Made by a program: the position numbers and the translations under genes. Under the pieces are notes generated by a model. It saw only the letters and a list, made by a program, of their open reading frames with translations. It was not told the DNA's origin and did not search any database. Positions 3,001 to 27,310 of a stretch of 64,000 nucleotides of DNA are shown here, piece after piece. Location: positions 124,001 to 188,000 of IMG/VR virus record IMGVR_UViG_3300034072_000758; one strand, given 5' to 3'. Position 1 is the stretch's first letter. Every line of letters starts with the position of its first letter.

Positions 3001-5422
3001 TGTTCAGACGAATATTATACAGAACCTTCTCAACCCATGTTGCTGGTGGGTCGATTTCTGAAAGAGTTCCGTTTTCCAAGAAAGTTAAGATCGTTTGATT
3101 AAACTTGTTTTTGAAATATGTGTATTCGTGCTCAACAAAATTTATAGCTGCCACAACATCGAAACGAGAGTCACTGGCTACAAGCATAGTCTTCAACAGA
3201 GGGTTTCTGTGTTGAATGATGTAGTCACCATATCCGAAATACTTTTCAGTATCGCGGTAGTTGTTGATGCTATATGCGCTTCCGGCGAAGTTCGACTGTC
3301 CGGTCATGATCGAATTGAAATGATCGAACCACTTGTTTTTGTCGATAAATTCAACTTCTTCGTTATTTGGGTTAGCTTGTAGGTTCAGGGGTGTTGAGTA
3401 AACGCCATTAGCAATCTTTGTCTGGGAACTGAAATCCGGGTTCAAAAACCAATTATTCGAAAACTCATTTGTATTCCAGATGCGGTGATAGTAATAACCA
3501 ACGATCTCTTCGTTCTCAGCATATGTCACGCGATCCGTCATCGAATAGACTTGGAAAATATGTTTGTCGTATTCATTTAATACGGTCGGGAAACCAAGAA
3601 CGGAATCAGCCACACCATTCCCAATCTCATATCCGAATAGTTTGTTCCCGGCGAACGAAGATGTTGGATAAGTTAGTTCATCATCCAACTTGTTTTTGTT
3701 CGAATCATAGAGTTGGAACAGTGGCGGCACACCCGAATTATAAGCTTGGGCCAAGACCCATTGTGTTCCGGTGAAGCGGTATTCGTTGTAGTGATGGAAG
3801 TCCGAATAAACTTGTGGAATAGCTACACCATTGGCGTCACGCACTCCATTTCCCGGTACGAGACGAACGATGTCACCCAATTGTGGAGCGCCTTCGGAAA
3901 TCAGTTCAATAACCGCTGCGTTACCCCCCGTAGGCAATTCGATTTCTTCGTTGGATACGACACGATAGATACGTTGGTTCAAACCAACTTCAACGGTCGA
4001 GTTGGACTGAACGACCAAAAGGCGATCATTCGGTTGAAGAACATATGAGTCGGTTGTGCCGGGATTGACCACGATACTACCAACATATTCACCATTTATT
4101 TCCCCGAAGAACTTACCATTGATGTGTGACAGAGTAACTTGTTCTTCGTCCCATACGTTGTTGTCATATGGGTACAAATCCCAATGGTCAATAACATCGA
4201 GATCATCCGTGAGCATGATTGCTTGAACGTCTGGTAGACGATTTGTACCATAATCATAGAGTTCTATATTCGGAAGGAACTCGATAATAGGACGCACGGC
4301 TTTCTTGGCATTTAGATCAAGGTCGGACCACTTCAAAGAATTTTGGTGTATCCATAGGTTTTTGAGAGACCAAGCATTGCGATCCAGAGAGCGTCTGTCG
4401 TTCAAAACATAAACGGGTGTCTCTGAACCAGCATCTTGTGTGTGATCATCTGTAAAAACAATCGATGTCCCAACTCCGTCAACGATGAACACCTTACCCA
4501 AGGATACCCCATCATTCAGACGAAGGCGCATACCCGAAGTGATCTCAACTTGGTCGATTTCTTTCCAGTATTCGGGGTTGAATGTATCGGTCGCTGTATG
4601 TTGTGTGATACAGAGATAATTGCGGGTTCCATAGTAAACGACTTCCCCAACGTTGTAGACGCGGCTTGAACGCACGTAGGACGCCCCAGAGAAGCCGTAA
4701 GAGTAGGCTTCCCAATATTGGAATGGGTGGAGTGCTTCGGCGGTCTTACCCTCGTATACGGCTTTTAAATCGCCATAACGGATGACTTCAATAATCGACC
4801 CAGCAGCCGGGGTAGCGATCTGTGCCTGACCGTTCACGATGTCGGCGGTGACTTCTTCACCGTTGACCAAAACGGACGGATGCTCGTCATCACCACCAAA
4901 GCCTAGAATGACCGATGGGAGTGTGAAGCGATTTTGAACGCCATCGCCGGTATAAACGTTTCTCGGCGCTTTCAAATTCAGCAGGGTCTTTTCATATTCG
5001 TCATCTGTCAAGCCACCCATCCAAATGTATTGGTTCGGGTTATTGATAGCATCCAGATTGATCGGCGGTGACCAAGAGTAATAATCCCCGGAAAAGAGGC
5101 GCGAATGATCTTCGACGTTTCCGCCCATGCTGTCGAGATAGTTGATCAGATCATCGTAGAACAGGGTATAGGCGACGTTACCATTCACCTTGCTGATCAT
5201 GGTTGGTTCGAGTTGATAATACTCGCGCTTGATGTCCTTCTCAGGAATGTAAAAGTCTTTTGTTGAGTCGAAATACGATGGCTTCTGTCCGATATAACCG
5301 GTCAAGGTTTCAGACGCACCACTTTGAAAGAGGTGATCGACCGTTGCGGAGAAGAAGTTCTTAAGAGTTTCGGTCTGATTGACAACCGGAAGGCTCTCAA
5401 CGAAAAAACGTTTCTTTGTCAT
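1..5422 (-). CDS. Giant virion structural protein (baseplate/tail-associated), >1800 aa, truncated by the left window edge
   Basis: Hand translation from ATG at 5422 gives MTKKRFFVESLPVVNQTETLKNFFSATVDHLFQSG...YYQLEPTM...RLFSGDYYSWSPPINLD. The frame is also open at the window edge and where spot-checked. No complete minus-strand ORF is in the track, consistent with run-off. Contains a CBM5/12-like motif near 1490-1603 (DWRASTNYAINTKISYNGKIYVALRSHLSSAVFESAFW). Preceded by TAAATA-N5-ATG. Confidence 0.85.
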   Translation of the reverse strand, partial: MTKKRFFVESLPVVNQTETLKNFFSATVDHLFQSGASETLTGYIGQKPSYFDSTKDFYIPEKDIKREYYQLEPTMISKVNGNVAYTLFYDDLINYLDSMGGNVEDHSRLFSGDYYSWSPPINLDAINNPNQYIWMGGLTDDEYEKTLLNLKAPRNVYTGDGVQNRFTLPSVILGFGGDDEHPSVLVNGEEVTADIVNGQAQIATPAAGSIIEVIRYGDLKAVYEGKTAEALHPFQYWEAYSYGFSGASYVRSSRVYNVGEVVYYGTRNYLCITQHTATDTFNPEYWKEIDQVEITSGMRLRLNDGVSLGKVFIVDGVGTSIVFTDDHTQDAGSETPVYVLNDRRSLDRNAWSLKNLWIHQNSLKWSDLDLNAKKAVRPIIEFLPNIELYDYGTNRLPDVQAIMLTDDLDVIDHWDLYPYDNNVWDEEQVTLSHINGKFFGEINGEYVGSIVVNPGTTDSYVLQPNDRLLVVQSNSTVEVGLNQRIYRVVSNEEIELPTGGNAAVIELISEGAPQLGDIVRLVPGNGVRDANGVAIPQVYSDFHHYNEYRFTGTQWVLAQAYNSGVPPLFQLYDSNKNKLDDELTYPTSSFAGNKLFGYEIGNGVADSVLGFPTVLNEYDKHIFQVYSMTDRVTYAENEEIVGYYYHRIWNTNEFSNNWFLNPDFSSQTKIANGVYSTPLNLQANPNNEEVEFIDKNKWFDHFNSIMTGQSNFAGSAYSINNYRDTEKYFGYGDYIIQHRNPLLKTMLVASDSRFDVVAAINFVEHEYTYFKNKFNQTILTFLENGTLSEIDPPATWVEKVLYNIRLNKTSDSPFSLSKMGGGQFYIPITPASIGVGITRKPDFFFDDTMGGIKFIIGHDGSRTPAFNDFRDDIILELEHQLYNAIEPALLTERPVFDITEHVYIGGEYSRDEYLNVMESSFYKWASENNLDYRDNNSFDPDDYFTWNMTNGGAFDGSQLAGNWRGIYLKYFDTTRPHSHPWEMLGFTDKPVWWDIEYGAAPYTRGNTKMWTDIEEGRIRQGQRAGLSARYARPNILNILPVSEEGALLDPVEARIVIVLPIMSDAASEWVYGDCSPVENLWRLSSAYAYAQAIASFLLKPAKFIEEGWDTINNRKIDNGQYINLTTGNRPKNSELYVHGEFLDRERVYACGIQQFIGEYIISLGADPAIFGNAVRGLNVMLGHKMGGFTSVSDMVTTTDNFGIIPSDDVNLVLYQSAPIKSDFYSGIIVTWNGSGWTMSGYDDSQPWFNIIPPMITSPRYKITTGTSEEITYNDWRASTNYAINTKISYNGKIYVALRSHLSSAVFESAFWDEVGTVTASDNVSVLVYSQGEDEVIKIPYGTTFYTPQEVTDFILGYERYLESRGWLFDEVENELVINWKLSVKEFLEWSSVEYEAGESIFFSPSTYKAKYKTDHGLVSSVMTSVNGKKNIVGYTGVSKTSEQVAVSRREDETVFQSTDGDIYGIRVKVREIEHAILFSNQTIFGNLIYNPLFNLRQPRIRILGKRSVDWTGRLDAPGYVIANNEIVPNFMKSTDDFLNMYDIEDHNNATFATQARHNIGYSKRDYLSNLAINEIQQFEFYQGMIQQKGSVGTFDKLLRSDYVDQNRELAFREEWAFKIDQYGGVARNKTASFLIQQSDMSSDSEIVHFSVGNTIGNDMIEIYDNTTVDTRWVERADDPLNVFQTRTTYAPRDTDLPVSGYVRTNEVNNIVFSYEDIQTLTHISAGDTVWVHSVDASRGLTPLDTQWYFVGVYNNSTTYWNTANLVLTTNSSYVVENMDNDIVFRSPSALAPFITTSTGLIPEAGKT

Positions 5423-8451: not shown

Positions 8452-8471
8452 CTTATTCCCTATGATAGTTG

Positions 8472-8545
8472 TGACCACGGCAGGATTCGAACCTGCGACC
8501 GTCCGCTTAGAAGGCGGATGCTCTATCCATCTGAGCTACGTAGCC
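8472..8545 (-). tRNA. tRNA-Arg (anticodon UCU)
   Basis: GGCTACG-TA-GCTC-AGATGGATA-GAGC-A-TCCGC-CTTCTAA-GCGGA-CGGTC-GCAGG-TTCGAAT-CCTGC-CGTGGTC-A folds as a cloverleaf; followed by CAA, so CCA is not encoded. Confidence 0.95.
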
Positions 8546-15024: not shown

Positions 15025-15527
15025 GACTGGAAGAACAGGCCAGTGTCGCCAGCTAAGAACTTTGACAGCGGCACAAACACATAGCTGCCGTATCTGACCG
15101 AAGCATTACCATTCACTAGAGGGTCGTCGTGGCTAATCACGGCGACCTCTTCTACATTATTGAACTTCATAATAACCAGAACGCGCTTACCACAAGCCGT
15201 AGCGTCTTGCTCGGCCTGTGAGAGCCAATCATTCAGTTGCTTGTAGTCTTGCTTCATGATTGACGCGAATGAAGGCGGCGTCTTGTAGTGCTTACATTCG
15301 ATGCTGTAGGCAAACGTGTCCGGGGTTATGATGTCACCAAATGTTGCCTTGGATAGGTCGTGCGTCTCTGTACGCGCCTTGTTGGTGCCTCCGAAGAACG
15401 AACCGCTATCACTCGCTCGCCTAAAACCTTTGGTTATACCAAGATGTTCAGCGAAACGATCTGAGAAGAGATTCGAGATTTTGCGTTCGAAGGTATTCCC
15501 CTTCGCTTTTGAATTTATACCGGCCAT
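15021..15527 (-). CDS. Holliday junction resolvase-like PD-(D/E)xK nuclease
   Basis: NSKAKGNTFER...GDII...IECKHYK. Confidence 0.8.
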   Translation of the reverse strand: MAGINSKAKGNTFERKISNLFSDRFAEHLGITKGFRRASDSGSFFGGTNKARTETHDLSKATFGDIITPDTFAYSIECKHYKTPPSFASIMKQDYKQLNDWLSQAEQDATACGKRVLVIMKFNNVEEVAVISHDDPLVNGNASVRYGSYVFVPLSKFLAGDTGLFFQS

Positions 15528-15550: not shown

Positions 15551-16000
15551 TTAATCCCCTAGAAAATCGAGCACTTGGGTTTGGAACGCCATGTGGGCGG
15601 GATCACGGTTGAAGTATTTGCGCTCATGTCCACTCAAAATGATCTGGAAACAATTGTCGATGTAAATGTCGCCTTCATTGGGTTTGTAGACTGTTGCTTT
15701 AAACAGATTGTAGGCGAAGAGATAGTCGCTGTATTCCTGTCCAGTGGAAGAATTGGTTCGTTGAAGAATGGTGTTTTTGAATAGTGCTATTTCAAGCATT
15801 TGGAAATCGAACACTTCTTCATTGTAAATTGTGTTTTTTTCCAAATATTCTTTTATCTTGCCTTTGATCTGTTTGATCAAATTAATCTCGGTGTTCAAGT
15901 ATTCGCTAAGATGAAGAATGATCAATACTTTATTTTCGACAAAATGCTGCCGAAAAACTTCAAACCATTTCTTATCATCCACAAGCTTGTTACTGAACAT
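15551..16000 (-). CDS. Hypothetical protein
   Basis: 149-aa AT-rich ORF. Confidence 0.55.
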   Translation of the reverse strand: MFSNKLVDDKKWFEVFRQHFVENKVLIILHLSEYLNTEINLIKQIKGKIKEYLEKNTIYNEEVFDFQMLEIALFKNTILQRTNSSTGQEYSDYLFAYNLFKATVYKPNEGDIYIDNCFQIILSGHERKYFNRDPAHMAFQTQVLDFLGD

Positions 16001-16031
16001 GTCTCATTATTACACAATAGTTAATATGAAA

Positions 16032-16037
16032 TAAATA
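16032..16037 (+). promoter_or_regulatory. Late promoter TAAATA box
   Basis: TAAATA-TTAAA-ATG(16043). Confidence 0.7.
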
Positions 16038-16042
16038 TTAAA

Positions 16043-16676
16043 ATGCGTTACTCAGAACTTTTCGCTTCATGAAGAAGAACCCGATCTGTTCTATAAGCTT
16101 CCGGCGAATGTTCAAGAAGAAATGAAAGAAGACGTACTCAACAAGATCATGAGTGATGATCCGGCTGATGCTCCGACAACCGCCCACATGAGCTTCAACA
16201 AACAAATGAAGCGCAACACATGGCTTGTTCACTTTTCAGACAACGCGAGACAAATCTGGTATGAAGGTTTCAAGTACGGTGTAGACCGTATGGACAAGCT
16301 CGGCCTGACAACCTATCTGAATAATAAAGAGAAGGAAGAGGGTGGCTACAATTTCGCATTCGAGGCCAATTCGCGCTATGCGTCGAATGCTGCCCGTAAC
16401 CATAAGTACGGACGTGATGCCGTGATCTTCCAGAGTGCTGGCATCAATTGTGAGCACTATGGCGATGAAGAAGATCAAGTCGTATTCTGGGGCGAAGACG
16501 TTGATTGGCACAGCATCATCTACATTCGTTACGAAGATGGCGACTGGTGCCTGATTTCCCGACGCGATCTGAGGAACGGTAATGACGTATTGCTTCGTTC
16601 AGAGAACTTCGAATCTATTGTCAAGTGGGTAGCGAAGAACCATCAGCAATATCGCAAATACCTTTACGGTAAGTGA
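16043..16676 (+). CDS. Probable ADP-ribosyltransferase-fold internal virion protein, split by a +1 frameshift near its 5' end
   Basis: ATG 16043 gives MRYSELFAS*; the +1 frame is open (SLHEEEPDLFYKLP...) into track ORF 16122-16676, which has WLVHFSDNARQIWYEGF...YNFAF...GDEEDQVVF. Confidence 0.55.
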
Positions 16677-16922
16677 TCAGTGATGCGAAATATGATTATG
16701 ATTAATCGGTTTTTTCTTTAGACTTGCAATACCGATCACGATCAAGACAATGATTTGACCCAATATAAATACCGGGATTTCCCACCATTTATTGAGAAAT
16801 GTCTGTACCAAACTTGTTTTTAACCATAGGTCCGCGATAACAGAGCCGACAAAATAGCCTATGGGAAAGGTGAACCAACCTCTATCTATATAGAAACGAA
16901 AGGCCCATTCAACATATTTCAT
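16677..16922 (-). CDS. Small membrane protein
   Basis: Two hydrophobic segments. Confidence 0.55.
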   Translation of the reverse strand: MKYVEWAFRFYIDRGWFTFPIGYFVGSVIADLWLKTSLVQTFLNKWWEIPVFILGQIIVLIVIGIASLKKKPINHNHISHH

Positions 16923-17152
16923 CGACCTTTACCCCAATCCTCGATAAAATATTCCCAATTTTCTTTGCCATTACGGAGATCGGCGTAATCGATGTAGGCG
17001 TGAGGGTTTTGTCCCGCAGCTATACACGCGGCCTTGGCTTCGGCCTCAGTGCGAATAATTGGCTTCCGGTGCGCCCGGTCGAGCTTCATGGGACGCACGG
17101 TCACACCGCGCAATGATTGTTTTGGCTTGAGCTTGAGCTTGTTCATACCCAA
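16919..17152 (-). CDS. Hypothetical basic protein
   Basis: 77 aa; ATGA-coupled to the next gene. Confidence 0.55.
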   Translation of the reverse strand: MGMNKLKLKPKQSLRGVTVRPMKLDRAHRKPIIRTEAEAKAACIAAGQNPHAYIDYADLRNGKENWEYFIEDWGKGR

Positions 17153-17182
17153 TGGATATGTCGAATATACTTTACTGTCAAC

Positions 17183-17188
17183 TAAATA
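17183..17188 (+). promoter_or_regulatory. Late promoter TAAATA box
   Basis: TAAATA-TCTTC-ATG(17194). Confidence 0.75.
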
Positions 17189-17193
17189 TCTTC

Positions 17194-17619
17194 ATGTCTC
17201 ACTGGTATAGAACAATCATCGAAAATATGGAAGAGGCCGTCATTAAATTGCGCGGTTTTGGCTCTGCCTCAAACACGGAAGAGTTTATGGAAGATTGGGA
17301 AAACATTACGGAAGAACATCCGTGGACGCCGAACATGCGTGTTTTCAACGATGCCGTGATGGTCAAGCTCGTCAAGTGGGGTGGAGCAATCCACATCGAA
17401 GATATTCAGTCACACGAGGGTAATCCAAAGGGAGAAGGCTCCAAGGCCCTACAAGCCATTTGTGACCTCGCTGACAAGCATCATGTGACTTTGGACCTTA
17501 CGGCTCAGGGAGACCGTGGAACGCCCACAGAGGCCCTTGTGAAGTGGTATACGCGCTTTGGTTTCACCATCACAGCCGACGATGAACGTGGTCCTGACAT
17601 GGAGCGCAAGCCGCGTTAA
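17194..17619 (+). CDS. GNAT-family acetyltransferase-like protein
   Basis: KGEGSKALQAICDLAD...LDLTA...LVKWYTRFGF; start reassigned by the late box. Confidence 0.72.
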   Translation: MSHWYRTIIENMEEAVIKLRGFGSASNTEEFMEDWENITEEHPWTPNMRVFNDAVMVKLVKWGGAIHIEDIQSHEGNPKGEGSKALQAICDLADKHHVTLDLTAQGDRGTPTEALVKWYTRFGFTITADDERGPDMERKPR

Positions 17620-17797
17620 GCTTCTCGAATACTTGTGACTGTTTCGACCTCAAGATCGAAATAATCTGAAAGATTTGCTTCCAGATGCTCTTGGCTTTTT
17701 GACCATATCCGCTGTTTATTCGGAGTATGTTCCTGTTTCGGATAGTGATAGGTGACTATGAAACATTTGTTTTGATCGGTCATATTTTATCTTCCTT

Positions 17798-18202
17798 TCA
17801 ACCTTTCAGATAACGGATATTATCGCCGAAGTAGCGAAGTTCGGACGGAGACAATGAACCATTGAAGCCCGAAGTTGTGAACATGGACATGCTGGACCCA
17901 AACGCCGTGCCGGGTATCGTGGCGAGATATTCATCCGCCGCATTTTGAAGCGGGTTGCTGGACTTCCGATAACGGTCACACATGCGCTCGAAAAAATCCA
18001 CGCCATCGTTACCCAGATGAAGATCGAAGAAGAAGGCCATAGCAAAGACGTGGCGCGAAGGTGAGACATACCATAGGCCATAGATGCGATCATAGACGAA
18101 CGGGCTGTTATCGAAATCGCGCAGGGAGATCGCTTCTCGACCAGTACCGCATTCGCCCATCATGACGGCGAGTTGTTCGGGGGTGGGCTTAAAGCGAGGC
18201 AT
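17798..18202 (-). CDS. Hypothetical protein
   Basis: 134 aa; overlaps the upstream gene's stop. Confidence 0.6.
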   Translation of the reverse strand: MPRFKPTPEQLAVMMGECGTGREAISLRDFDNSPFVYDRIYGLWYVSPSRHVFAMAFFFDLHLGNDGVDFFERMCDRYRKSSNPLQNAADEYLATIPGTAFGSSMSMFTTSGFNGSLSPSELRYFGDNIRYLKG

Positions 18203-18482
18203 GGTCGGCCATCAGCTTGTTGAATTGATCCATAGCTCCGTTTTCAGTCAGACCTTCGTAGTCGGTATGAGTGAAGTGACCGCCATTCTTGTCGCCGTTC
18301 CAGACGTTCAGACGAACGATATATTCGTCGGCGGCAGGACGCCACAGGATCGACAAATAATTATCGTTGGGGAAGTTATGCTCGACCAGAGCGAATACCG
18401 GGGTTTTGGCTTTTGACTCTTCAATCTGGGCGAGCGTGACGGGCTTGTCCACGAAGAATTTGTGATAATGAATGACGTGCAT
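18189..18482 (-). CDS. Hypothetical protein
   Basis: GGAG SD; TTGACA at 18543-18548 upstream. Confidence 0.6.
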   Translation of the reverse strand: MHVIHYHKFFVDKPVTLAQIEESKAKTPVFALVEHNFPNDNYLSILWRPAADEYIVRLNVWNGDKNGGHFTHTDYEGLTENGAMDQFNKLMADHASL

Positions 18483-18550
18483 ATTTTATCTCCATGTATA
18501 GCCATGAGTAGGTACTTATAGCTATAACATAGATTAGAATATTGTCAAGC

Positions 18551-19441
18551 TTACACTACCCAGATTTCACCCTTAGCGCTATTCAATATTTTGTTGAATT
18601 TACTACCCATGAGTCTTGGGAAATTAGCCCAAGCCTTTTGAGCATGAGCGAGCTTCTTTTCATCTGTGGTCAACTTTTCATCGGGGTGAATTTCGGGAGG
18701 CAATTCTTTTAACGTGATCTTACCCTTGATCATCCATTGCGTGAAGGTTTCAACATACCATTCGTATGGTGTCGCCAACCTGTTATTTCGAGCACTCGCC
18801 ATTGTCCCCAGATGTGGTCCCAAAATTTTTTGGTATATCTCCTGCCACTCATCACGTTGCATTGTACCAAAATAGCTATAATCTCTTTTGGACGGCCATA
18901 TGGTCCCGTAAGCATAAGAAGTAATCTTCTCTACGAAATTCTCAAAGTAATGAGCCGCATCAAATATCGCCTCATGTTCGTGAGACTTTGCGGTTAGAAA
19001 GCAATGTCCCAGACGATGCGCAATCATCCACGGACTGCGTAAGTTTATCTTGTCAATGTCCGAGAGATTGTTCGTAAAGATAACCGTAATAACATCCGGC
19101 GTATGATTTGCCGCGATCCGCCCCCAAACCTTCTCGCCCATCATGTCCTTGATCCATTCTTCTTTGACTGGACCGATGTTCATAGTCGGATCGTAATTTG
19201 GATTGGTGCTTTGCCAGAAGTACATGTCGAATGTGGTTGGTACTTTCAGAAATGCCGACTTCACCCGCTGGATGGTCGGCTCATGAGTTATGGCGCGTTT
19301 GTCACTGTCGGACCAATGCTTTCGCTCTTGGCGGTATGTCCCACTAAATTTGCTTATCATCTGGTCTTCATTGTCACGAAGATCAGGATCAACATTCCAG
19401 TTTCGGATTGGCATTTCGGAAATTATTTCGTGATAGCGCAT
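18551..19441 (-). CDS. Probable internal head protein with zincin-like HxxxH motif
   Basis: N-terminus MRYHEIISE resembles the T4 capsid-targeting sequence; PWMIAHRLGH...EWYVE. Confidence 0.6.
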   Translation of the reverse strand: MRYHEIISEMPIRNWNVDPDLRDNEDQMISKFSGTYRQERKHWSDSDKRAITHEPTIQRVKSAFLKVPTTFDMYFWQSTNPNYDPTMNIGPVKEEWIKDMMGEKVWGRIAANHTPDVITVIFTNNLSDIDKINLRSPWMIAHRLGHCFLTAKSHEHEAIFDAAHYFENFVEKITSYAYGTIWPSKRDYSYFGTMQRDEWQEIYQKILGPHLGTMASARNNRLATPYEWYVETFTQWMIKGKITLKELPPEIHPDEKLTTDEKKLAHAQKAWANFPRLMGSKFNKILNSAKGEIWVV

Positions 19442-19446
19442 GAAGA

Positions 19447-19452
19447 TATTTA
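19447..19452 (-). promoter_or_regulatory. Late promoter TAAATA box
   Basis: TAAATA-TCTTC-ATG(19441). Confidence 0.75.
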
Positions 19453-19467
19453 GGACGTATCATGCCC

Positions 19468-21351
19468 TTACTTTCGCATCAAGAAATTATGTCCACCGAT
19501 CTTACCGATCAATCGCAAACTTGAAGCCCAAGACGGACTTGATGTCGATGGGTTATAGAACCACATAGCGCTCTTACGATTGGCGTTAATGATGTTATAC
19601 GAATTGTTGGTGCTCTTGTAAGTACCAGCCATAACTTGTCGGCAAACTTCTTCAATTTTCTTGTAGAGCGCGGTGCTCTTGTTCTTGGTGTAAACCTCAA
19701 TACCGCGCTTCTCAGCCGTTGCGTAATCACCCTTCTTTACCGAACCTCTATTGTACGCATTCGGGAACCAGAAGTGAGAGAAAGCGTTTTGTGCGAGAAC
19801 ATATTTCTTTACACCCGCAAATTTATCGTTCATGTTGTTCTCACGGAAATTATGCTGATAACGATTCAGAACTGTTCGAGCAACAGCCGCTCGACCATCA
19901 TCATTTTCTCCACGCGATTCCGTCCATACGCATATCGTCAGCCATGTCAGATCGTCATCCGTGAAATTCTCATTGAGCGTTGAAGTTACCACGGATGAAT
20001 TACCATTCTCGATTACATTCTCACGATCATCAGCGCTTGCCACTTCGGACGGCTGAATTGGATCAGGCGATGGGTTGGACCCGGTTGGATGACCGGCGAA
20101 TGGTTCGTGTGTTGGTAACCTAGTGGTGATCGTAGGGCGTGATCCTTGCTGATAACAAGGCGCATCACCCTGCGTCTCGGCCAAAGTGTTAGGTTGGGCC
20201 ACAGAAGCCTTCACAGGGCTTACAGAGGCACTTGCGCCCGTATTATGGAGCAATTTACCAGCGGAGATAATATGGTCCCCACCAGCCCCGTTGTAGATCG
20301 TTCCAGAGGCTCCTAATTGAATATCGCCACCAGAACCCAGAACCAAGCGACTCCCACCCGTTCCAGACAGAACACCACCGAACTCCAAAGCCAAATCACC
20401 ATTTCCGGCGAAGTGAGTATGGTTGGCCGATTGGAAAGTCAGATTGCCGCCCGCGCGCAGGTTTAAATTACCATCGGCTTCGATGTTCAACGAACCATCG
20501 GCATGTAGGTTCAGAGAGCCTTCGGCGCGCATCGAAATCGCACCACGACTATAAGCGTCGATACCCTTGTCGGAAATAGACAACCAAGAGTCGCCATTCT
20601 TCGAATTGATGTATACAAAACCAGTAGTATCGTTGATAAGAACCTGAGCACCTTGGCGCGTTCTCATACGGATGTATTCGTTACCTTCTTCTTCATCCAC
20701 ATAGATCGTGTGCCCGCGCGGTGTGTTCCAACCGTATACATTCGAGATCGGAGCACGTCTTGCTGATGCTTGTGAAACACCGCGAGACGGGTCTTGGAAC
20801 AAACCCTGTTTAGCAATACCTTCGGCTAGTGGTGTGAAGATTGGGCGCTTAGGAGCGTTTTGATTTTCCTTGGAAAATTTGTTGTACTCAACCACAGGGG
20901 GATTTGAACCACAGGCGTCAAACGTCTCAGCCGGGGTGCCACCAGCGATCCCCGGAACCATGTGATTCATGTTCTGTTGATAAACACAGCCGATCCAAAA
21001 TGCTTGAGCGGTGTCACCGTTCGCAAAGCATACCAGCACTTCGGTATCAATATGTGGCGGAACGAACCACATACCATAGGACGACTGACTACCCTCCATG
21101 TTGGTAGCATCTTCGACCAGATTACCGCGAGGGGTTACCCCAGCAAACGGAGAGCCATAGCTACAGATGATCCACGAAGCCTCTTGTGTGGGATCGCCAC
21201 ATATTTCTGGAATCCACACAGCAAGACGGCCCATACATTGTGGGTCTTCGTTGGCCTTCACAATGGCGCGATAGATACCATTATATCGAACACGACCAGC
21301 AAAACTATCGGTGCTGTAATTATCTGGAAGTTTTCTAATATCACGTACCAC
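19468..21351 (-). CDS. Baseplate central spike (gp5/VgrG-like) fused to a C-terminal SleB/Hydrolase_2 cell-wall hydrolase
   Basis: DPQCMGRLAVWIP and PPHIDTEVLVCFANGD OB-fold motifs; Gly-rich beta-helix repeats; C-terminal VWTESRGE..GRAAVARTVLNR...FS...FYNP...IGGHNF. Confidence 0.85.
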   Translation of the reverse strand: MVRDIRKLPDNYSTDSFAGRVRYNGIYRAIVKANEDPQCMGRLAVWIPEICGDPTQEASWIICSYGSPFAGVTPRGNLVEDATNMEGSQSSYGMWFVPPHIDTEVLVCFANGDTAQAFWIGCVYQQNMNHMVPGIAGGTPAETFDACGSNPPVVEYNKFSKENQNAPKRPIFTPLAEGIAKQGLFQDPSRGVSQASARRAPISNVYGWNTPRGHTIYVDEEEGNEYIRMRTRQGAQVLINDTTGFVYINSKNGDSWLSISDKGIDAYSRGAISMRAEGSLNLHADGSLNIEADGNLNLRAGGNLTFQSANHTHFAGNGDLALEFGGVLSGTGGSRLVLGSGGDIQLGASGTIYNGAGGDHIISAGKLLHNTGASASVSPVKASVAQPNTLAETQGDAPCYQQGSRPTITTRLPTHEPFAGHPTGSNPSPDPIQPSEVASADDRENVIENGNSSVVTSTLNENFTDDDLTWLTICVWTESRGENDDGRAAVARTVLNRYQHNFRENNMNDKFAGVKKYVLAQNAFSHFWFPNAYNRGSVKKGDYATAEKRGIEVYTKNKSTALYKKIEEVCRQVMAGTYKSTNNSYNIINANRKSAMWFYNPSTSSPSWASSLRLIGKIGGHNFLMRK

Positions 21352-23689
21352 TTGTTGTTCCCTCTTCCGACGAACCCTTCTTCTTCAATACCGGGGCAAT
21401 CAATTCCAGTTTAATAGCAGTCAATGTTTGCTTGAACTCACCTTTGTCGAAACGGCTGACCACATTCGTAACTCGATATACACCCAAGAACACATCGTCT
21501 GGTCGGATGATTAGGTTACCGTCATCGCCAACTTTTAATGGGAACCGGAAATTGAAAGCAAAGGTGTTATCGCCTTCGGCAAAGTTCGGCAAATTGCGAG
21601 CGCGGACACCCTCTGCGTTTAGAAGAACACGACGCTCTATAGATGAATATCCCAACCAGTATGGATCGCCCTTAATATCCATCGTGATATTGATCATAGC
21701 ATTTGTGAGCGGGGCATATTGCTGGTTATAGAGAGCGCCTACCAGAGACGCCCCACGATGCCATTGTGCGGCATATCCAGAGCCAGCCGCATAGTCTTCC
21801 CCAGCGCGCTGATTATAGGTCGCAATGTATGGTAACGCGAATGGCTTGTCGAAATCCTCGGCATACGATTCCAAAGGCAGCACATCCTTCATACGATCCA
21901 TCTGGATTTGATTTTCCAGATTTGTATCAGTTCTAATCTGGTTGGCGTTAAAACGAAGGTCCGTTCTCTGTTGTTCAAGATTTGCGATACGACCTTGAAT
22001 TTCAGTCTTTTTGGCTTCGTCAGTCGTCGCTTCCATTTCGCTAGTAAGATTGCTTATCTCGCCGTTAATACCTGAAAGCTTTTTACGAATTTCAGACGGT
22101 GAAAGTTCAACATTTTTCTTCTGATCGGAATAGGTGCCTGAGTTGATAGCGCTACTTGGATTATGCTTCTCGTGATCAGTCACGGCAGCATTTTTTGTAC
22201 GCCATCCACCAAGTTGAGGAAGCAATGATGAAAAGGCAAAGTTGAACTCAGTGTCGAGATTAATCACTTCGGTATTCATACCAGTGAAGCGATACTCATA
22301 CTTCTTCTTGAGATAATTATTATCCAATAATGTTTGAACCATATCCGTGGTTACTTGTTCATCAGACGTGTTTTCATATTGCGAAGGCGCAAGGTTAGCA
22401 CCCAATGTTCTAAAGCCCCAAATATGATAGGTTACCTCTTTCATATAGTTACCGGTGATCGGATCGTAACCTGTTATCTTGATCTCAGGCTCAATGACGG
22501 GTACGACCGCCAGACGATATTTCTTACCCTTATAGAGACCGCCTTCATCCTCGATGTCCAGTGGAGTAGAAGTATCCAGCATAAGCATCTGCATCGACTC
22601 GCAATGCGCATACATTGCTGTGATGATGTCCGTTAAAGTCGCACCTCTTGGAATTTCAGCGGAAATGTATTGATTCGACGTTCCCTGAGAAAATGGGATA
22701 TTGCGAATAGGACTGTGCTCCGGGTTCGTGAGATCAGGACTTAGAACAAAGTTATTCGGGTCATATTCCTTATCAGATGTTACGATGCTTCGCGCCTTGA
22801 TTTTAAATTTGTAAATTTCCCCAGCATACATTTCATCCCATGCTCTTGTGAGCTTGGCCGCTAGATCATCAAGGAATGTTTTTACGGTATTTCCACCGAT
22901 ATTCAATTTTTCAGGAATACGCCCACATGTTTCATCATTGAAACCCTCCATGTCATAAGGCATACATGTCAGAATATGACGCGCACCAGCTACGTCGATG
23001 TTGGTCTTGATATTACTAATCGAGATTTGATAAATCCATCGCCCGCCATTATCCAAATCCATCTTCTCGCATGGATTGTAATTGACATCCCCGTTTTCAT
23101 TGTAGCCAATAAAGGTGAGTTCGAGGAAGTACCAGAACTTCATATAATTCTGAACGTTCAAGTCCTGCGCCGAAATGATCATCGATTCCAGCAATGACGA
23201 TCCCACAGGTTCGGTGATGACGATCTCGAAGCTAGATGAATACGAACTTCTCGTTCGCCATCCCGGCGCGGTCATTTGGTTGATCTCAACACTCTCGATA
23301 TTGATACCCGCTGTTACGCCCGTCTCAGCAATAGTGATTTTGGGAATGGCGTCGATGATCTTGTAAATCTCTTGCGTGTCATAGCTTGTCACACGATCCA
23401 TGATGTCGCGTTCGGTTGTCATGAACAATCGGAAACGATAGTTCGACATCGGCATTTCGGATAGAACGTTTGGAAGGAAATTGCTTTCATCTTCCAAGAG
23501 CCTTGAGATTGCATTGTTTTGCGCAAGCTGTTTCTTCTGAGCGCGCTGGAACGCCGCCTCGTTTTCGGCTTTCTTATCCGCCTCAGCCTTCTTCTCTTCC
23601 GCTGTCTGAGGGGCCTCAGCAACAGACATAGTTGTGTTAGCAGTCTGGTTCGGAACGTAAGGTCTGTTTGGATTATTTGTAATAGCCAT
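21341..23689 (-). CDS. Baseplate hub-like structural protein (gp27-like)
   Basis: IKGDPYWLG and FLGVYRVTNVVSRFDKGEFKQTL; lies between the gp53-like and gp5-like genes. Confidence 0.7.
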   Translation of the reverse strand: MAITNNPNRPYVPNQTANTTMSVAEAPQTAEEKKAEADKKAENEAAFQRAQKKQLAQNNAISRLLEDESNFLPNVLSEMPMSNYRFRLFMTTERDIMDRVTSYDTQEIYKIIDAIPKITIAETGVTAGINIESVEINQMTAPGWRTRSSYSSSFEIVITEPVGSSLLESMIISAQDLNVQNYMKFWYFLELTFIGYNENGDVNYNPCEKMDLDNGGRWIYQISISNIKTNIDVAGARHILTCMPYDMEGFNDETCGRIPEKLNIGGNTVKTFLDDLAAKLTRAWDEMYAGEIYKFKIKARSIVTSDKEYDPNNFVLSPDLTNPEHSPIRNIPFSQGTSNQYISAEIPRGATLTDIITAMYAHCESMQMLMLDTSTPLDIEDEGGLYKGKKYRLAVVPVIEPEIKITGYDPITGNYMKEVTYHIWGFRTLGANLAPSQYENTSDEQVTTDMVQTLLDNNYLKKKYEYRFTGMNTEVINLDTEFNFAFSSLLPQLGGWRTKNAAVTDHEKHNPSSAINSGTYSDQKKNVELSPSEIRKKLSGINGEISNLTSEMEATTDEAKKTEIQGRIANLEQQRTDLRFNANQIRTDTNLENQIQMDRMKDVLPLESYAEDFDKPFALPYIATYNQRAGEDYAAGSGYAAQWHRGASLVGALYNQQYAPLTNAMINITMDIKGDPYWLGYSSIERRVLLNAEGVRARNLPNFAEGDNTFAFNFRFPLKVGDDGNLIIRPDDVFLGVYRVTNVVSRFDKGEFKQTLTAIKLELIAPVLKKKGSSEEGTTSGT

Positions 23690-23694
23690 ACCTG

Positions 23695-23700
23695 TATTTA
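23695..23700 (-). promoter_or_regulatory. Late promoter TAAATA box
   Basis: TAAATA-CAGGT-ATG(23689). Confidence 0.75.
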
Positions 23701-23727
23701 TGGCTTATTAAAACCGTATTTTATTAA

Positions 23728-24033
23728 TCAGAGGCTCAGAGCTTGCTTTAGTGTAGCAAATGTTGGAACCATGATTACTGTACCAGTCGTCATATCCCAA
23801 ACCGGGTCTTTGAGGATGTTTCTGTTTCTCACAGAAAAAATCCACCAATATTCTGGCGAACCGTAAAGGTCCAGCGACAATTTGTCGGGGCGATTTTCAT
23901 AGAGCTTAGTGATGGTGAACTCGGTATCGTCGGTCGATTCTGGGATAGGGCGGTGAACATAGTTCTTGATGTACCAAGACGCTTGTGGCGTGGAAACATA
24001 AGGCGACGATGCTGTATAATTAACCTTGCTCAT
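23728..24033 (-). CDS. Baseplate wedge protein, T4 gp53/LysM-like
   Basis: YENRPDKLSLDLYGSPEYWWIFSVRN; start reassigned to ATG 24033. Confidence 0.8.
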   Translation of the reverse strand: MSKVNYTASSPYVSTPQASWYIKNYVHRPIPESTDDTEFTITKLYENRPDKLSLDLYGSPEYWWIFSVRNRNILKDPVWDMTTGTVIMVPTFATLKQALSL

Positions 24034-24038
24034 ACGTA

Positions 24039-24044
24039 TATTTA
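24039..24044 (-). promoter_or_regulatory. Late promoter TAAATA box
   Basis: TATAAATA-TACGT-ATG(24033). Confidence 0.75.
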
Positions 24045-24080
24045 TATTGAAAAAATTAACTACAATTCGTATCATCCCAT

Positions 24081-24728
24081 ATGTTCAGAGAAAATGACAA
24101 CGGCCCCATCATCCTCGATCCTCGCACAATAGAATACGTTAGAGAAGACCAATTGGACAAGGTGCGTGAAATCAACGAATGCGTTGCTTTCAATATGGAC
24201 GATCTGGAAAAGTGGAAGGATGAATTAACCGACGATATGATCGCGGCCCTTATCCTGAATGATCCCTACACCATAATCAAATACTACGATGAACCAAAAG
24301 AAGAATGGCAGATCATATCGATTTCTCAATCGCCGATCATGGTGTTCTATATAAGACCCTCGGCTATAAGCGACAAGGTTCTTCGTCTTGCGCTAGACCA
24401 ACTCAAACTAAAGAACGCCTATGGGATGTCAGTAGATTGGTTGACGCATTTTCTGAAATTATATCCAAAAGATTTCCATGAAGAAATTATTGATTGGTAT
24501 GTGTGCTCAATTGATTATTATTTCAATAACAAGAACAAGATAGATGCGGTAAGAAGTTATTGGACGAAAATTCACTTCTATTTGGCACATTCCATCCCCG
24601 AATACAAAATCAGCACTATCGAAGAAACGCTCTATCCTGTCCTGACACGGGGAGACCATAAATCTATCCTTGATCACTGGATCGTTTTAGAAAAAGTCGG
24701 TATTCCATTCGATACACAAACCTCTTGA
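24081..24728 (+). CDS. Helical-repeat (DUF4116-like) hypothetical protein
   Basis: DEPKEEWQIISISQSPIMVFYIRP resembles the repeats of 7291-8037. Confidence 0.55.
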   Translation: MFRENDNGPIILDPRTIEYVREDQLDKVREINECVAFNMDDLEKWKDELTDDMIAALILNDPYTIIKYYDEPKEEWQIISISQSPIMVFYIRPSAISDKVLRLALDQLKLKNAYGMSVDWLTHFLKLYPKDFHEEIIDWYVCSIDYYFNNKNKIDAVRSYWTKIHFYLAHSIPEYKISTIEETLYPVLTRGDHKSILDHWIVLEKVGIPFDTQTS

Positions 24729-24783
24729 CAATTTATGGACAATATGTAAATATTGTCTATGTGTCAATATAGGAGACGGTATC

Positions 24784-25149
24784 ATGGAACTTCAAAACTA
24801 CCCTGCTGTCCAAAGTTGGACACGCAAGGTCTACATCTTCACCGGCAATCTTATCATCGCCACCGGCACGGTTCATGGTGGTGTGGATTGTTTCGTCAAC
24901 ATCGATCCCGATGACGGGTTGTTCCGCCATCTGATCAAGGACGATGTGGATCACATCAAGGCCCTGCGCAGACTGAATACCGGCCTTCGTTTCGACAAGT
25001 ACGGCGGGAAGTTCGTCAATACGTGGGAAGACTACATTCCATCCCCGGCCATGCTCGAACTTCAAATCGTCTGTAAGACATCGTTCGATGTCGGCATCGC
25101 GGGTGATCGCTACGCCAGCTTGACTGGTGACGATTCGTTCGCCGCTTAA
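24784..25149 (+). CDS. Hypothetical protein
   Basis: AGGAG SD; TTGACA at 24725. Confidence 0.65.
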   Translation: MELQNYPAVQSWTRKVYIFTGNLIIATGTVHGGVDCFVNIDPDDGLFRHLIKDDVDHIKALRRLNTGLRFDKYGGKFVNTWEDYIPSPAMLELQIVCKTSFDVGIAGDRYASLTGDDSFAA

Positions 25150-26084
25150 TCCAGCGAAAAGAAACTGGCTGGTAGTGGCTTAACCAGAACGAGGTTTGCC
25201 GGTAGACCATGTGAACTATTCAGTTCATCATCAACCGTCTTGCCTACACCATCTTCCGGGTCAACGCGAAGATACTCTTTTGGGATGTTGGTGAGCTTCA
25301 CTATCGTCCCATTATCTTTTTCGTCAGCATACCACTGAGCATTGTCTGGGGTATTGGTGACATAAAGATAGCGGCGCTGCCCCATTTGACCGCCCTGCGC
25401 CCACTTATTCGGCTCCCAACCATTCTTGAGTAAGCTATCAGCCGACTCTCTCGAAGTACCGTGATAGAGTGCCGGGATCACATCAGCATTTTCGTCTAGG
25501 TTGATTTTGAGGTCGTATTCGTCGGTCGGGACATCTTTCCATTTGATGATTTCGACCTTCTTGATTTTCTTTGGGTTGACGAGAACCACCATCGTATTAC
25601 GCCCCCCACCGTAATTATTCGACACGGTATAATCCACACCTTGCTCGACTAGCCATCGGCGGAAATCGGCTGTCTTCGATGGCTTAAGTAAATCATAATT
25701 CAAAATGAGATTGGTGAATTGTTCGGCAGTGATGCCTTCTCCGTTCTTTCTCTGTACCGAAATCTTATACGATTCCCAGAATGCTTCTTGTGTTCTCTTG
25801 TCTCTAGGAAGATTGCGCTTGCCCCATTCTAAGCAAACCTCGTTTGATAGCACAACCTGATCGGCGCGATTACCTTTCTCGAAAGTGACGCGGTACATCT
25901 TGTTGCCGCCCTTGGCAAATTTGGCTGCGATCTCGATGTCAGAGATCAGATACAAACCGACGCCATGAACGATTTGTCCACTCTTGTTTCCTAAGATTTC
26001 GTTGTAATCGGATTCGAGATTACGCCCACCATGATACATGGTGATCAAGTTAGAACTCTCAGTCAGAAACTCGTTTAATAGCAT
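25146..26084 (-). CDS. Tandem two-domain ADP-ribosyltransferase-fold protein, probable internal virion protein
   Basis: Domain 1 MYHGG...HGVGLYLISD...KFA; domain 2 LYHGTSRESADSLLKNGW...LYVTNTPDNAQWYA; N-terminus MLLNEFLTE. Confidence 0.65.
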   Translation of the reverse strand: MLLNEFLTESSNLITMYHGGRNLESDYNEILGNKSGQIVHGVGLYLISDIEIAAKFAKGGNKMYRVTFEKGNRADQVVLSNEVCLEWGKRNLPRDKRTQEAFWESYKISVQRKNGEGITAEQFTNLILNYDLLKPSKTADFRRWLVEQGVDYTVSNNYGGGRNTMVVLVNPKKIKKVEIIKWKDVPTDEYDLKINLDENADVIPALYHGTSRESADSLLKNGWEPNKWAQGGQMGQRRYLYVTNTPDNAQWYADEKDNGTIVKLTNIPKEYLRVDPEDGVGKTVDDELNSSHGLPANLVLVKPLPASFFSLD

Positions 26085-26087
26085 ACA

Positions 26088-26501
26088 TTATTTAGGTTTT
26101 TTGTTATTCACAGACAGATATGACAATTCTATTGTGACTTTAGTGCGTTCCCACCCACTATTATCGCCTCGTTTATCTATTTCAGATAATTCAATTTTTT
26201 CTATCAAGCATCCAAGAACATTCAATTCAGAAACAACAGTTCTATTCTTCTGTTCCTTATATTCAATCGTTATATGTAATGGTTGCTGATCATGTTTGAG
26301 CGGTGTTAAACGACTCATAAATGTATCGAGAACCAAGCTTTCAGCATCATCGAAAAACGCTAATACTATATTTTCCCATTGAAGTCGCCCACTAACATAT
26401 TTGGCTTTAGGCGGCTTACAATATTCAATCATAGCATTCACTTGTTCAGGAACGTCATGTACAATAACATTGAAGTTAGTAGTAGATTTGATCATGAGCA
26501 A
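26088..26501 (-). CDS. Tail-tube (T4 gp19)-like protein, divergent
   Basis: YVSGRLQWENIVLAFFDD...LGCLIEKIELSEID...KVTIELSY pattern. Confidence 0.5.
   Translation of the reverse strand: MLMIKSTTNFNVIVHDVPEQVNAMIEYCKPPKAKYVSGRLQWENIVLAFFDDAESLVLDTFMSRLTPLKHDQQPLHITIEYKEQKNRTVVSELNVLGCLIEKIELSEIDKRGDNSGWERTKVTIELSYLSVNNKKPK
26089..26094 (-). promoter_or_regulatory. Late promoter TAAATA box (4-nt spacer)
   Basis: TAAATA-ATGT-ATG(26084). Confidence 0.65.
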
Positions 26502-26533: not shown

Positions 26534-27310
26534 TTAAATCCAACCCTTGTTCTTACGCATCAATTCGCCAGTTCTAAACTTATCAAGTGAGAACTCGGTG
26601 CGTTGAAGTGTTGGTGTTTGCTGTATGACCACTTTTATATTCACAGTGAATTTCGCAGGAACATACATGGTGATACCAGCGGACTCACATAGAACCATGT
26701 TGATCTGATCATCGAACGACCATCCGTGCGATTGGACGATGACTGGAAGCTCGTTGAACATACCATTACCGTAGCCTTCGAGAAGAAGCACGGGTGGTGG
26801 AAGACCGGCCAGCTTATTAGCCTTGTCTTGCTCACCAAAATACATTTTGGATACGGTTCTCAAGAAGTGTAGCACAGCAATAGCATACGCGCCTTCTCTC
26901 TGGTTCTGAACCGTGAAGGTTGCGTTGATGTCAATCGAGGCATTCGGTGTTCCGGTATAATGCGAATATCCATAGTTGGTATGGACCAATGCGGCCTCAG
27001 AATAATTAACGCCCTGACTGAACGTGATGACCGGGGTATATGGGAATAGCAATCCATTGGTCCCATCGGTCATATCTGGATGCATGATCGAGAGCACATT
27101 ATCCTGCGCCACTTTCCCGTAAATCTGATCTGCTTGACCATCCTTGGCACGAAGACGCAAACGAATATCCGTATTCGTTGTAGCCACCGGGCTAGAGACA
27201 ACACCAAAACTTTCATCATCCGCAGCCGATGAAATATCAACGATGGTGTTGGACGAATTAACTGCCAACGCCGCGCCAGCAAAGGATGCGAGAGGATTAT
27301 AATAGACCAT
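26534..27310 (-). CDS. Baseplate/tail-tube initiator-like structural protein
   Basis: LLFPYTPVI...HFLRTVSKMYFG...PPPVLLLEGYGNGMFNELPVIV. Confidence 0.65.
   Translation of the reverse strand: MVYYNPLASFAGAALAVNSSNTIVDISSAADDESFGVVSSPVATTNTDIRLRLRAKDGQADQIYGKVAQDNVLSIMHPDMTDGTNGLLFPYTPVITFSQGVNYSEAALVHTNYGYSHYTGTPNASIDINATFTVQNQREGAYAIAVLHFLRTVSKMYFGEQDKANKLAGLPPPVLLLEGYGNGMFNELPVIVQSHGWSFDDQINMVLCESAGITMYVPAKFTVNIKVVIQQTPTLQRTEFSLDKFRTGELMRKNKGWI

Follow-up and report, generated by a model that had tools for sequence, protein, structure and literature searches.

The capsid-targeting sequence (CTS) of bacteriophage T4 is the textbook route by which proteins that are to be delivered with the DNA are loaded into a phage head, and to our knowledge few proteins, all of them from T-even phages, are known to carry such sequences. 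The head protease of T4 prefers Leu or Ile at position P3 of its cleavage sites, and the termini annotated in the T4 record read MKTYQEFIAE↓A for the internal proteins IPII and IPIII, MKTFKEFTS...ITE↓A for IPI and MELITELFDE↓D for Alt. The internal proteins of T-even phages are diverse and have only the CTS in common (PMC3012670); in T4 this peptide comprises ten residues, is removed once (PMC8442874; PMC5694885) by a protease of the gp21 type, which cleaves after Glu (PMC5694885), and is sufficient for the packaging of foreign proteins (PMC8442874). Here we analyse a stretch of 64,000 nucleotides (hereafter the window), bases 124,001-188,000 of IMG/VR record IMGVR_UViG_3300034072_000758, a phage genome of 516,805 bp that has direct terminal repeats and is rated complete. 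Putative late genes of this genome that encode otherwise unrelated proteins begin with short N-terminal peptides (leaders) of 8-13 residues, which fall into two classes and which we propose, with moderate confidence and on grounds of sequence, to be T4-type capsid-targeting propeptides, the cargo of which would be packaged, trimmed and delivered together with the DNA.

Two further groups of described proteins need to be kept in mind. Many head-internal proteins of the giant phages related to phiKZ (SPN3US and phiKZ itself) are likewise cut after Glu by a gp21 homologue, and a role in directing incorporation has been suggested for their propeptides (PMC5694885). Most of these have 80-130 residues, and the cleavage motif is A/S/G-x-E, whereas the leaders described here have 8-13 residues with Leu, Ile or Val at P3, i.e. 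the T4 type. The polyvalent proteins found in phages and conjugative elements (Iyer et al. 2017, PMC5512222) share with the present set the ADP-ribosyltransferase (ART) domain ART-PolyVal (PF18760) and the GNAT domain, and both sets are predicted to be delivered early with the DNA. Unlike polyvalent proteins, those studied here are encoded by separate small genes, each with its own leader and with one or two domains rather than the 2-15 domains per polypeptide of the polyvalent type; no fusion to MuF or portal proteins is present, and processing by a zincin metallopeptidase would, in our interpretation, be replaced by processing by the head protease. The nearest characterized relatives of two of the putative cargo proteins are AcrVA5 (PDB 6IUF), for the GNAT protein encoded at 17194, and AcrIF11, an ADP-ribosyltransferase anti-CRISPR, for the ART encoded at 25146; the window proteins differ from these in carrying leaders and extra N-terminal segments.

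The genes concerned, with their leaders and late boxes, are as follows (coordinates are those of the window).

16031-16037, plus strand: late box ATAAATA, 5 nt ahead of the ATG at 16043
16043-16072, plus strand: leader stub MRYSELFAS followed by TGA (16070-16072), all that is left of the leader that an ART-fold gene once had
16122-16676, plus strand: body open reading frame (ORF) of 184 aa with an ART-like fold, in the +1 frame relative to the stub
17182-17188, plus strand: late box CTAAATA, 5 nt ahead of the ATG at 17194
17194-17223, plus strand: leader MSHWYRTIIE, a short class 2 form
17194-17619, plus strand: AcrVA5-like mini-GNAT acetyltransferase, 141 aa including the leader (from the family profile and ESM Atlas clusters)
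18551-19441, minus strand: HRxxH protein, 296 aa, with an invariant HRxxH..Y..E..E set
19415-19441, minus strand: leader MRYHEIISE, class 1
19447-19453, minus strand: late box CTAAATA, 5 nt ahead of the ATG at 19441
25146-26084, minus strand: ART-PolyVal/AcrIF11-like protein, 312 aa, with an ART fold in its N-terminal half
26058-26084, minus strand: leader MLLNEFLTE
26089-26095, minus strand: late box CTAAATA, 4 nt ahead of the ATG at 26084

A first-pass annotation of the window had listed four late genes starting with such peptides. Three of these starts stand, namely MRYHEIISE at 19441, MLLNEFLTE at 26084 and MSHWYRTIIE at 17194, which end in I-S-E9, L-T-E9 and I-I-E10, respectively, whereas the fourth, MRYSEL at 16043, belongs to a stub of nine codons. 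The three intact genes do have late boxes ([AC]TAAATA, 4-5 nt ahead of the ATG), and the likeness to T4 capsid-targeting peptides that had been pointed out is borne out as well, since the leaders are short and end in hydrophobic-x-Glu, as do those of IPI, IPII, IPIII and Alt in the T4 record.

The excess of these termini in the genome is not a matter of chance. Reading the 516,805-bp genome in all six frames gives 12 occurrences of the pattern MRYxE[ILVF], as against 0-1 in each of ten shuffled versions (about 0.2 expected), and the same pattern taken without its leading Met shows no excess (23 occurrences versus 15-38 in the shuffles). Class 1 leaders can be written M-R-Y-x-E-[IL]-[IL]-x-E. 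Class 2 (M[ST][NH]WYRN[LI][IV]NL[ILM]E, consensus MSNWYRNLxNLxE) is found in five further genes among all late-boxed ORFs of the genome, MSHWYRTIIE at 17194 being its short form, and looser variants such as MRDIINIILE, MREYMTILNE and MRFRIIPLLE also occur among the boxed ORFs. The codons of the leaders vary synonymously (Arg CGT/CGC/AGA, Tyr TAC/TAT, Glu GAA/GAG, Ile ATT/ATA/ATC), which places their conservation at the level of protein. The bodies that follow have no sequence similarity to each other: leaders stand in front of ART-PolyVal proteins (that of window 25146 and those of loci L004, L006, L007, L012 and L023, L-numbers denoting IMG/VR loci), GNATs (window 17194 and loci L016 and L005), the HRxxH protein and many proteins that belong to no family. 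Outside the window the leader genes are clustered in islands, at 219-226 kb, 255-264 kb (seven genes within 255,156-263,665) and 508-515 kb of the genome (coordinates on the 516,805-bp genome are hereafter marked G000), an arrangement that recalls the hyperplastic internal-protein loci of T4-like phages.

The boxes themselves have a fixed geometry. Of the 66 boxed ORFs of the genome, 48 have [ACT]TAAATA exactly 5 nt ahead of the ATG and 11 have it at 4 nt, 59 in all; the boxed starts of the window include those at 15527, 17194, 19441, 23689, 24033, 26084 and 27310. As a Shine-Dalgarno sequence cannot be accommodated in a gap of 4-5 nt, late mRNAs of this phage are probably leaderless. The same geometry is seen in gene gp213 of Pseudomonas phage PA5oct, and the ip genes of T4 and one gene of Agrobacterium phage Atu_ph07 have ordinary spacers. 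The leader does not simply accompany the box, as the late-boxed baseplate and virion genes of the window (starts at 23689, 24033 and 27310) have none.

A more specific indication of what the leaders may be comes from homologues encoded by other metagenomic phages, in which we located the start of the conserved body and read the residue preceding it, leaving P3 unconstrained. Glu at P1 combined with Leu, Ile or Val at P3 was found in 11 of 11 homologues of the HRxxH protein, 48 of 48 of the ART-like protein and 32 of 44 of the GNAT protein, with P2 variable in all three families. This junction pattern matches the (L/I)-x-E rule of T4. Some homologues have leaders that come very near to the T4 CTS MKTYQEFIAE itself, for example MKTFKQFIAE (P0151; P-numbers denote homologous proteins) and MNMKTFKTFVAE (P0061).

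The genome also encodes head machinery of the T4 type. A Peptidase_S77 domain (PF03420, the T4 gp21-type prohead protease; E 1.5e-21, 75 bits, cut-off 27) lies at G000 323908-324354, in an open frame that encodes 215 aa. There are also a Gp23-type capsid protein (E 3.8e-91) and a protein homologous to the PA5oct late sigma factor (38% identity, E 3.5e-55). Coiled-coil scaffold-like and acidic core-like proteins are encoded next to the head protease and capsid genes. One of these, an acidic core-like protein of 317 aa encoded just upstream of the head protease (G000 322870-323823; L001 463-1416), has the N-terminus MMRSILEE↓ALAAIIE, so that candidate scaffold or core proteins, too, begin with a motif of the same kind as the cargo. 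The structural proteins at large are distant relatives (22-28% identity) of those of Atu_ph07, PA5oct and Rak2-like phages.

The parallel with T4 thus extends from the short leader ending in hydrophobic-x-Glu, common to otherwise unrelated proteins with late boxes as in the internal proteins and Alt, to the protease (S77), the capsid protein (Gp23) and the late sigma factor (gp55 type) that the genome encodes. ADP-ribosyltransferases are one class of cargo in T4 and of putative cargo here, the genes have baseplate and tail genes as neighbours, like alt, and decayed leader remnants comparable to alt.-1 and alt.-2 occur. The differences are no less clear: the consensus here is MRYxEI[IL]xE or MSNWYRNLxNLxE and that of T4 MKTYQEFIAE; roughly two dozen genes are tagged here and about four in T4; the putative cargo here consists mostly of enzymes (HY-type PolyVal ARTs and GNATs), whereas that of T4 comprises small basic proteins and an R-S-E ART; and the late box abuts the ATG here, in a system known from genes alone.

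Functional predictions of differing strength can be made for the individual proteins. The assignment of the 312-aa protein (25146-26084) as an ART, suggested by the first-pass annotation, is supported at the level of fold. The match to PF18760 is below threshold (E 6.9e-5, 24.1 bits, gathering cut-off 31.2), and the leader-bearing paralogues L004, L006 and L007 pass it with 63, 40 and 73 bits, respectively. In the ESM Atlas model, residues 16-188 resemble an ART-PolyVal cluster with a template modelling (TM) score of 0.81 and an AcrIF11_ADP_ribosyl/ART-PolyVal cluster with a TM score of 0.70. For residues 78-312 the match is to a KptA cluster (TM 0.59), and the C-terminal half of the modelled protein may be a second, KptA-like ART fold. 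Alignment of the window ART with its paralogues by hhalign runs over the YHG..GxGxY motif but is non-significant (E 0.023, probability 2%).

The gene at 16043 turned out to be broken. We compared contigs of four public runs (X1-X4) with positions 15800-17700. Those of X2/X3, which represent a closely related strain sampled in a different study, contain 164 letters more than the window, inserted between 16064 and 16065. The deleted form is confirmed in X1 and X4; the depth is 83 in the probable source run and the second sample, X4, shows no difference, which makes the deletion a real lesion rather than an assembly error. Since 22 + 164 = 186 is divisible by three and the frame of the body includes 16065, leader and body would form one gene of 265 aa in the related strain, and 265 aa is the usual length of homologues of the body family (77 homologues, mostly 255-290 aa). 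These 77 homologues start with a leader, followed by a domain of about 75 residues (KYTxxN..FDPY) that is missing from 16122-16676. A 164-bp deletion, absent from the related strain, has severed the leader from the ART-fold body. Programmed +1 frameshifting and a homopolymer error at 16058-16062 had been considered as well and are ruled out by the 164 extra letters in the related strain together with the confirmation in the second sample.

The body ORF is modelled with high confidence (predicted local distance difference test, pLDDT, 92.7), and the best matches of the model in two independent fold searches are nearly all ARTs (ScARP, Scabin, MTX, TreX, pertussis S1, pierisin and KptA), with moderate scores (Foldseek E 1.2e-2, probability 0.97; VIA Z 6.5-5.0, with Scabin at Z 6.5). 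Within the family H37, Y76 and N77 are invariant and E117 is kept in at least 90% of homologues. We therefore have moderate grounds, resting on the model, to consider 16122-16676 a second, divergent ART-like protein, now without a leader, with a putative triad of the H-Y-E type. A comparison by hhalign of the ART paralogue profile with the profile of this family (A2) gave no match. In the same strain comparison, a neighbouring gene for a small predicted membrane protein (16677-16922, minus strand) differs by several substitutions and by three indels that keep the frame (one loss of 6 nt and two gains of 3 nt), whereas the changes in the adjacent GNAT gene are all synonymous.

The GNAT gene itself starts at a Met (17194) internal to a mechanically defined ORF, 17152-17619, and all seven of its strain differences are synonymous third-position changes, which marks 17194-17619 as a real gene. 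The single sequence has no match in Pfam and nothing useful in the PDB, 6IUF not being matched by it alone. An exhaustive search recovered 593 relatives, and the resulting family profile (A3) matches 6IUF with E 9.2e-8 over nearly the whole chain, other GNATs being reached at E 0.2-0.9; 6IUF is the N-acetyltransferase anti-CRISPR AcrVA5 (PMC11021501), and the earlier call of a GNAT is thereby upheld. The nearest Atlas clusters are viral GNATs (0.94-0.95), and Streptomyces phage entries labelled 'acetyltransferase' are among the matches. G80 is invariant within a ..KGEGS.. motif that conforms to GNAT motif A (R/Q-x-x-G-x-G/A). Some relatives are domains of multidomain proteins of 2-3 thousand residues, and one is fused behind an ART-PolyVal domain (P0093). 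Pairwise BLASTP detects no similarity between the window GNAT and the Pfam-positive GNATs of L016 and L005, so these represent separate GNAT lineages. Directly behind the leader the family has a motif, IKLRGF (window 17230-17260), that in several homologues recurs at the extreme C-terminus (..IKLRGF-NRPH, alignment A3); it could be a domain-boundary or docking element.

For the HRxxH protein (18551-19441), a word search gave 13 homologues, and 122 were found in IMG/VR; H142, R143, H146, Y178, E227 and E231 are invariant, and the leader residue E9 is kept in at least 90% of the homologues. The model has pLDDT 85.9, and its sole low-confidence stretch (below 50) is residues 1-8, so that the leader is modelled as an unstructured, flexible appendage. 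The protein had been described as zincin-like, a claim that fares poorly. In place of HExxH with its catalytic Glu the sequence reads H142-R143-x-x-H146, with the Arg invariant in 14 sequences. Zincins (4l7a, Zmp1/PPEP-1 and lethal factor) do lead the Foldseek list, but only with E 0.38-3; PPEP-1/Zmp1 align over the whole chain at no more than Z 3.4-3.8, and the best score in an unbiased fold search (Z 4.5) is to unrelated helical proteins. A search of BFVD returned two uncharacterized phage proteins only, and PDB sequences searched with the profiles of this family (A1) and of the ART-like family (A2) gave chance matches alone, with E above 0.1 (between them, a glycosylase and haemagglutinin HA2). 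With HExxH missing and the fold resemblance weak, the zincin reading is unproven; judging from the model, the protein is possibly a zincin derivative without the catalytic Glu. In multidomain relatives (IMG/VR L047, L055, L058, L066 and L075; at about 3001 in each) the domain is preceded by (I/V/T)-D-E↓M-A-(L/I). This junction, which lies within the chain, is of the cleavage type seen in the leaders and hints at polyproteins cut by the head protease.

The setting of the tagged genes among structural genes, as stated in the first-pass annotation, is correct, their neighbours being the following.

19468-21351, minus strand: baseplate hub with a gp5-like OB domain, in fusion with a cell-wall hydrolase (lysozyme)
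21341-23689, minus strand: virion structural protein, 782 aa, late-boxed, without leader; its PA5oct homologue was detected in virions by mass spectrometry
23728-24033, minus strand: gp53-like baseplate wedge protein, late-boxed, without leader
26088-26501, minus strand: tail-tube-like protein
26534-27310, minus strand: virion structural protein, late-boxed, without leader

In T4, alt adjoins genes 48 and 54, which encode baseplate and tail-tube proteins, and decayed copies of its own 5' end, alt.-1 and alt.-2, come after it. A context of baseplate and tail genes has been proposed by Iyer and co-workers as a mark of head-packaged ARTs (PMC5512222, PMC9503650).

Taken as capsid-targeting propeptides, the leaders would work as follows. 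The genes would be transcribed late from gp55-type TAAATA boxes 4-5 nt ahead of the ATG, and the leader would dock the protein into the scaffolding core of the prohead, where the gp21-like Peptidase_S77 would cut after the Glu of (L/I/V)-x-E and so remove it. We infer further, by analogy with T4 Alt and the internal proteins, that the mature enzyme would be retained in the filled head, exit with the DNA at infection and modify host proteins before phage transcription starts. The putative cargo encoded in the window would comprise the AcrIF11/PolyVal-type ART (25146-26084), the AcrVA5-like GNAT (17194-17619) and the HRxxH protein (18551-19441), and a fourth cargo gene, with an ART fold (16043/16122-16676), would have lost its tag through the 164-bp deletion. 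As the nearest characterized relatives of two of these proteins are enzymatic anti-CRISPRs, a likely use would be to modify host defence or transcription proteins before the phage expresses any of its genes; that defence proteins are among the targets is a guess drawn from the kinship with AcrVA5 and AcrIF11.

Several points weigh against this explanation. The phage is known only from metagenomes: a megablast search of cultured phages with the region found no match, nor did tblastn searches of cultured phages with the ART, the ART-like body and the HRxxH protein, and no RNA run containing the region was found. What the leaders have in common with the T4 CTS is a pattern (an amphipathic stretch ending in hydrophobic-x-E) and not the sequence itself. 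In Atu_ph07 and PA5oct the leader pattern has one match each, i.e. no excess, and the PA5oct match, gp213, adjoins the head protease and carries no mass-spectrometry flag. When we asked for Glu at position 7-14, a hydrophobic P3 and at least three hydrophobic or aromatic residues before the Glu, 25 of 62 late-boxed ORFs passed, as against 9% of internal Met positions; this excess speaks for the explanation, but with such a background the genome-wide count of about 25 leaders is approximate. Among 14 IMG/VR records searched, a homologue of the HRxxH protein is accompanied by Peptidase_S77 in all 8 that are at least 50% complete (including 4 of 4 that are at least 90% complete), which speaks for the explanation, but the phages concerned probably form one broad clade, so that the co-occurrence is not independent evidence and amounts to consistency rather than proof; the five records with the homologue but without the protease are fragments, 27-43% complete. 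Finally, public gene calls begin three of the genes at a later Met: M10 for 19441 (P0001, 287 aa), M12 for 17194 (P0092, 130 aa) and M16 for 26084 (the Atlas record). The leaders of all three are consequently missing from public protein collections.

If the downstream Met residues chosen by the public gene callers were the true starts, the leaders would not be translated at all. We regard this as very improbable, because homologues lacking a second Met also keep the leader at the protein level, the box spacing of 4-5 nt fits the upstream ATG and not the downstream one, and the more than 12-fold excess of the motif is tied to Met. A role in translation is a different matter: the conserved N-termini might be a ribosome-loading element (a downstream box) of leaderless late mRNAs rather than a targeting signal, and both the fixed position of the box, with no space for a Shine-Dalgarno sequence, and the A/T-rich DNA of the leaders would agree with this. 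Most boxed genes, including highly expressed structural ones, nevertheless lack the motif; the codons of the leaders change while the amino acids are kept; homologues in other phages retain Glu and a Leu, Ile or Val at P3 despite different sequences and lengths; and the Atu_ph07 gene with the pattern (MRLSEILEE) stands behind an ordinary spacer with AGGAG. We thus consider a purely translational role unlikely.

Two other possibilities are each possible in part and compatible with targeting. The leader may be a pro-sequence that keeps the enzyme inactive or subjects it to regulated proteolysis in the infected cell (for instance, protecting the producer from its own ARTs) without any packaging. 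A hydrophobic-x-E site beside potentially cell-harming enzymes, the short and disordered nature of the leaders and the stub gene, in which the leader was lost while the body ORF stayed open, are in keeping with such a role, but one would hardly expect a disordered tag of 8-10 residues to inhibit proteins of four different folds, all systems studied so far have the S77 protease acting in proheads (PMC5694885), the genes have late boxes and lie in a baseplate module, and some of the sequences are close to the T4 CTS, which by itself suffices for the packaging of foreign proteins (PMC8442874). As a full account of the leaders this, too, seems improbable to us. It is also conceivable that the shared 5' ends, late box and first codons together, are a recombination cassette that spreads by gene shuffling, as proposed for the promoter modules of T4-like phages, and that the peptide has no function. 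Leaders are always accompanied by the box, the leader genes lie in islands, and the 16043 stub and the alt.-1 and alt.-2 remnants of T4 demonstrate turnover at such 5' ends; on the other hand, DNA identity between leaders is low with largely synonymous differences, and the P1/P3 rule holds across distant phages. A functionless cassette is in our view quite unlikely, and a cassette as such does not exclude targeting, since the T4 CTS does both.

Some other loci of the genome deserve mention. A late-boxed ORF of 2,423 aa on the minus strand (window 1-5422, extending past the window start) begins MTKKRFFVES, with a V-E junction at position 9, and could encode a giant structural or polyvalent-type protein. 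A tRNA-Arg gene (anticodon TCT) is located at window 8471-8545 on the minus strand. Outside the window, a homologue of the anti-CBASS protein Acb1 (G000 10707, minus strand; PF23474, E 5e-23) starts with MKFRELLEP behind a late box, with Glu at position 8 but Pro at position 9, and is arranged back to back with a gene of 439 aa starting MRYFEILNE (G000 10734, plus strand), 27 bp lying between the two (loci L002 and L003).

If the capsid-targeting explanation is correct, the phage described here has a much expanded version of the T4 system. To judge from the sequences, the tag stands on some two dozen unrelated, putatively late proteins and recurs on homologues of these in many metagenomic phages that have the same protease. 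A broader generalization is possible, although we put it forward only tentatively: in uncultured huge phages with an S77 protease, an N-terminal leader of 8-13 residues ending in (L/I/V)-x-E might be a general capsid address, readable from sequence, on dozens of pre-packaged enzymes per genome, including relatives of AcrVA5 and AcrIF11 as well as multidomain precursors with (I/V)-D-E↓M-A-L junctions at which the chain would be cut internally. Were that true, sequence alone would suffice to list the effectors that never-cultivated phages inject, and anti-defence enzymes would be at work ahead of all phage transcription. A practical lesson is that the leader signal is invisible in protein databases wherever gene calls clip the N-termini. 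Should the tag work as it does in T4, it would supply a simple rule for predicting the injected proteins of uncultured giant phages, and the phage described here would enter its host with a pre-loaded host-modifying set of ADP-ribosyltransferases, acetyltransferases and one conserved enzyme-like protein.

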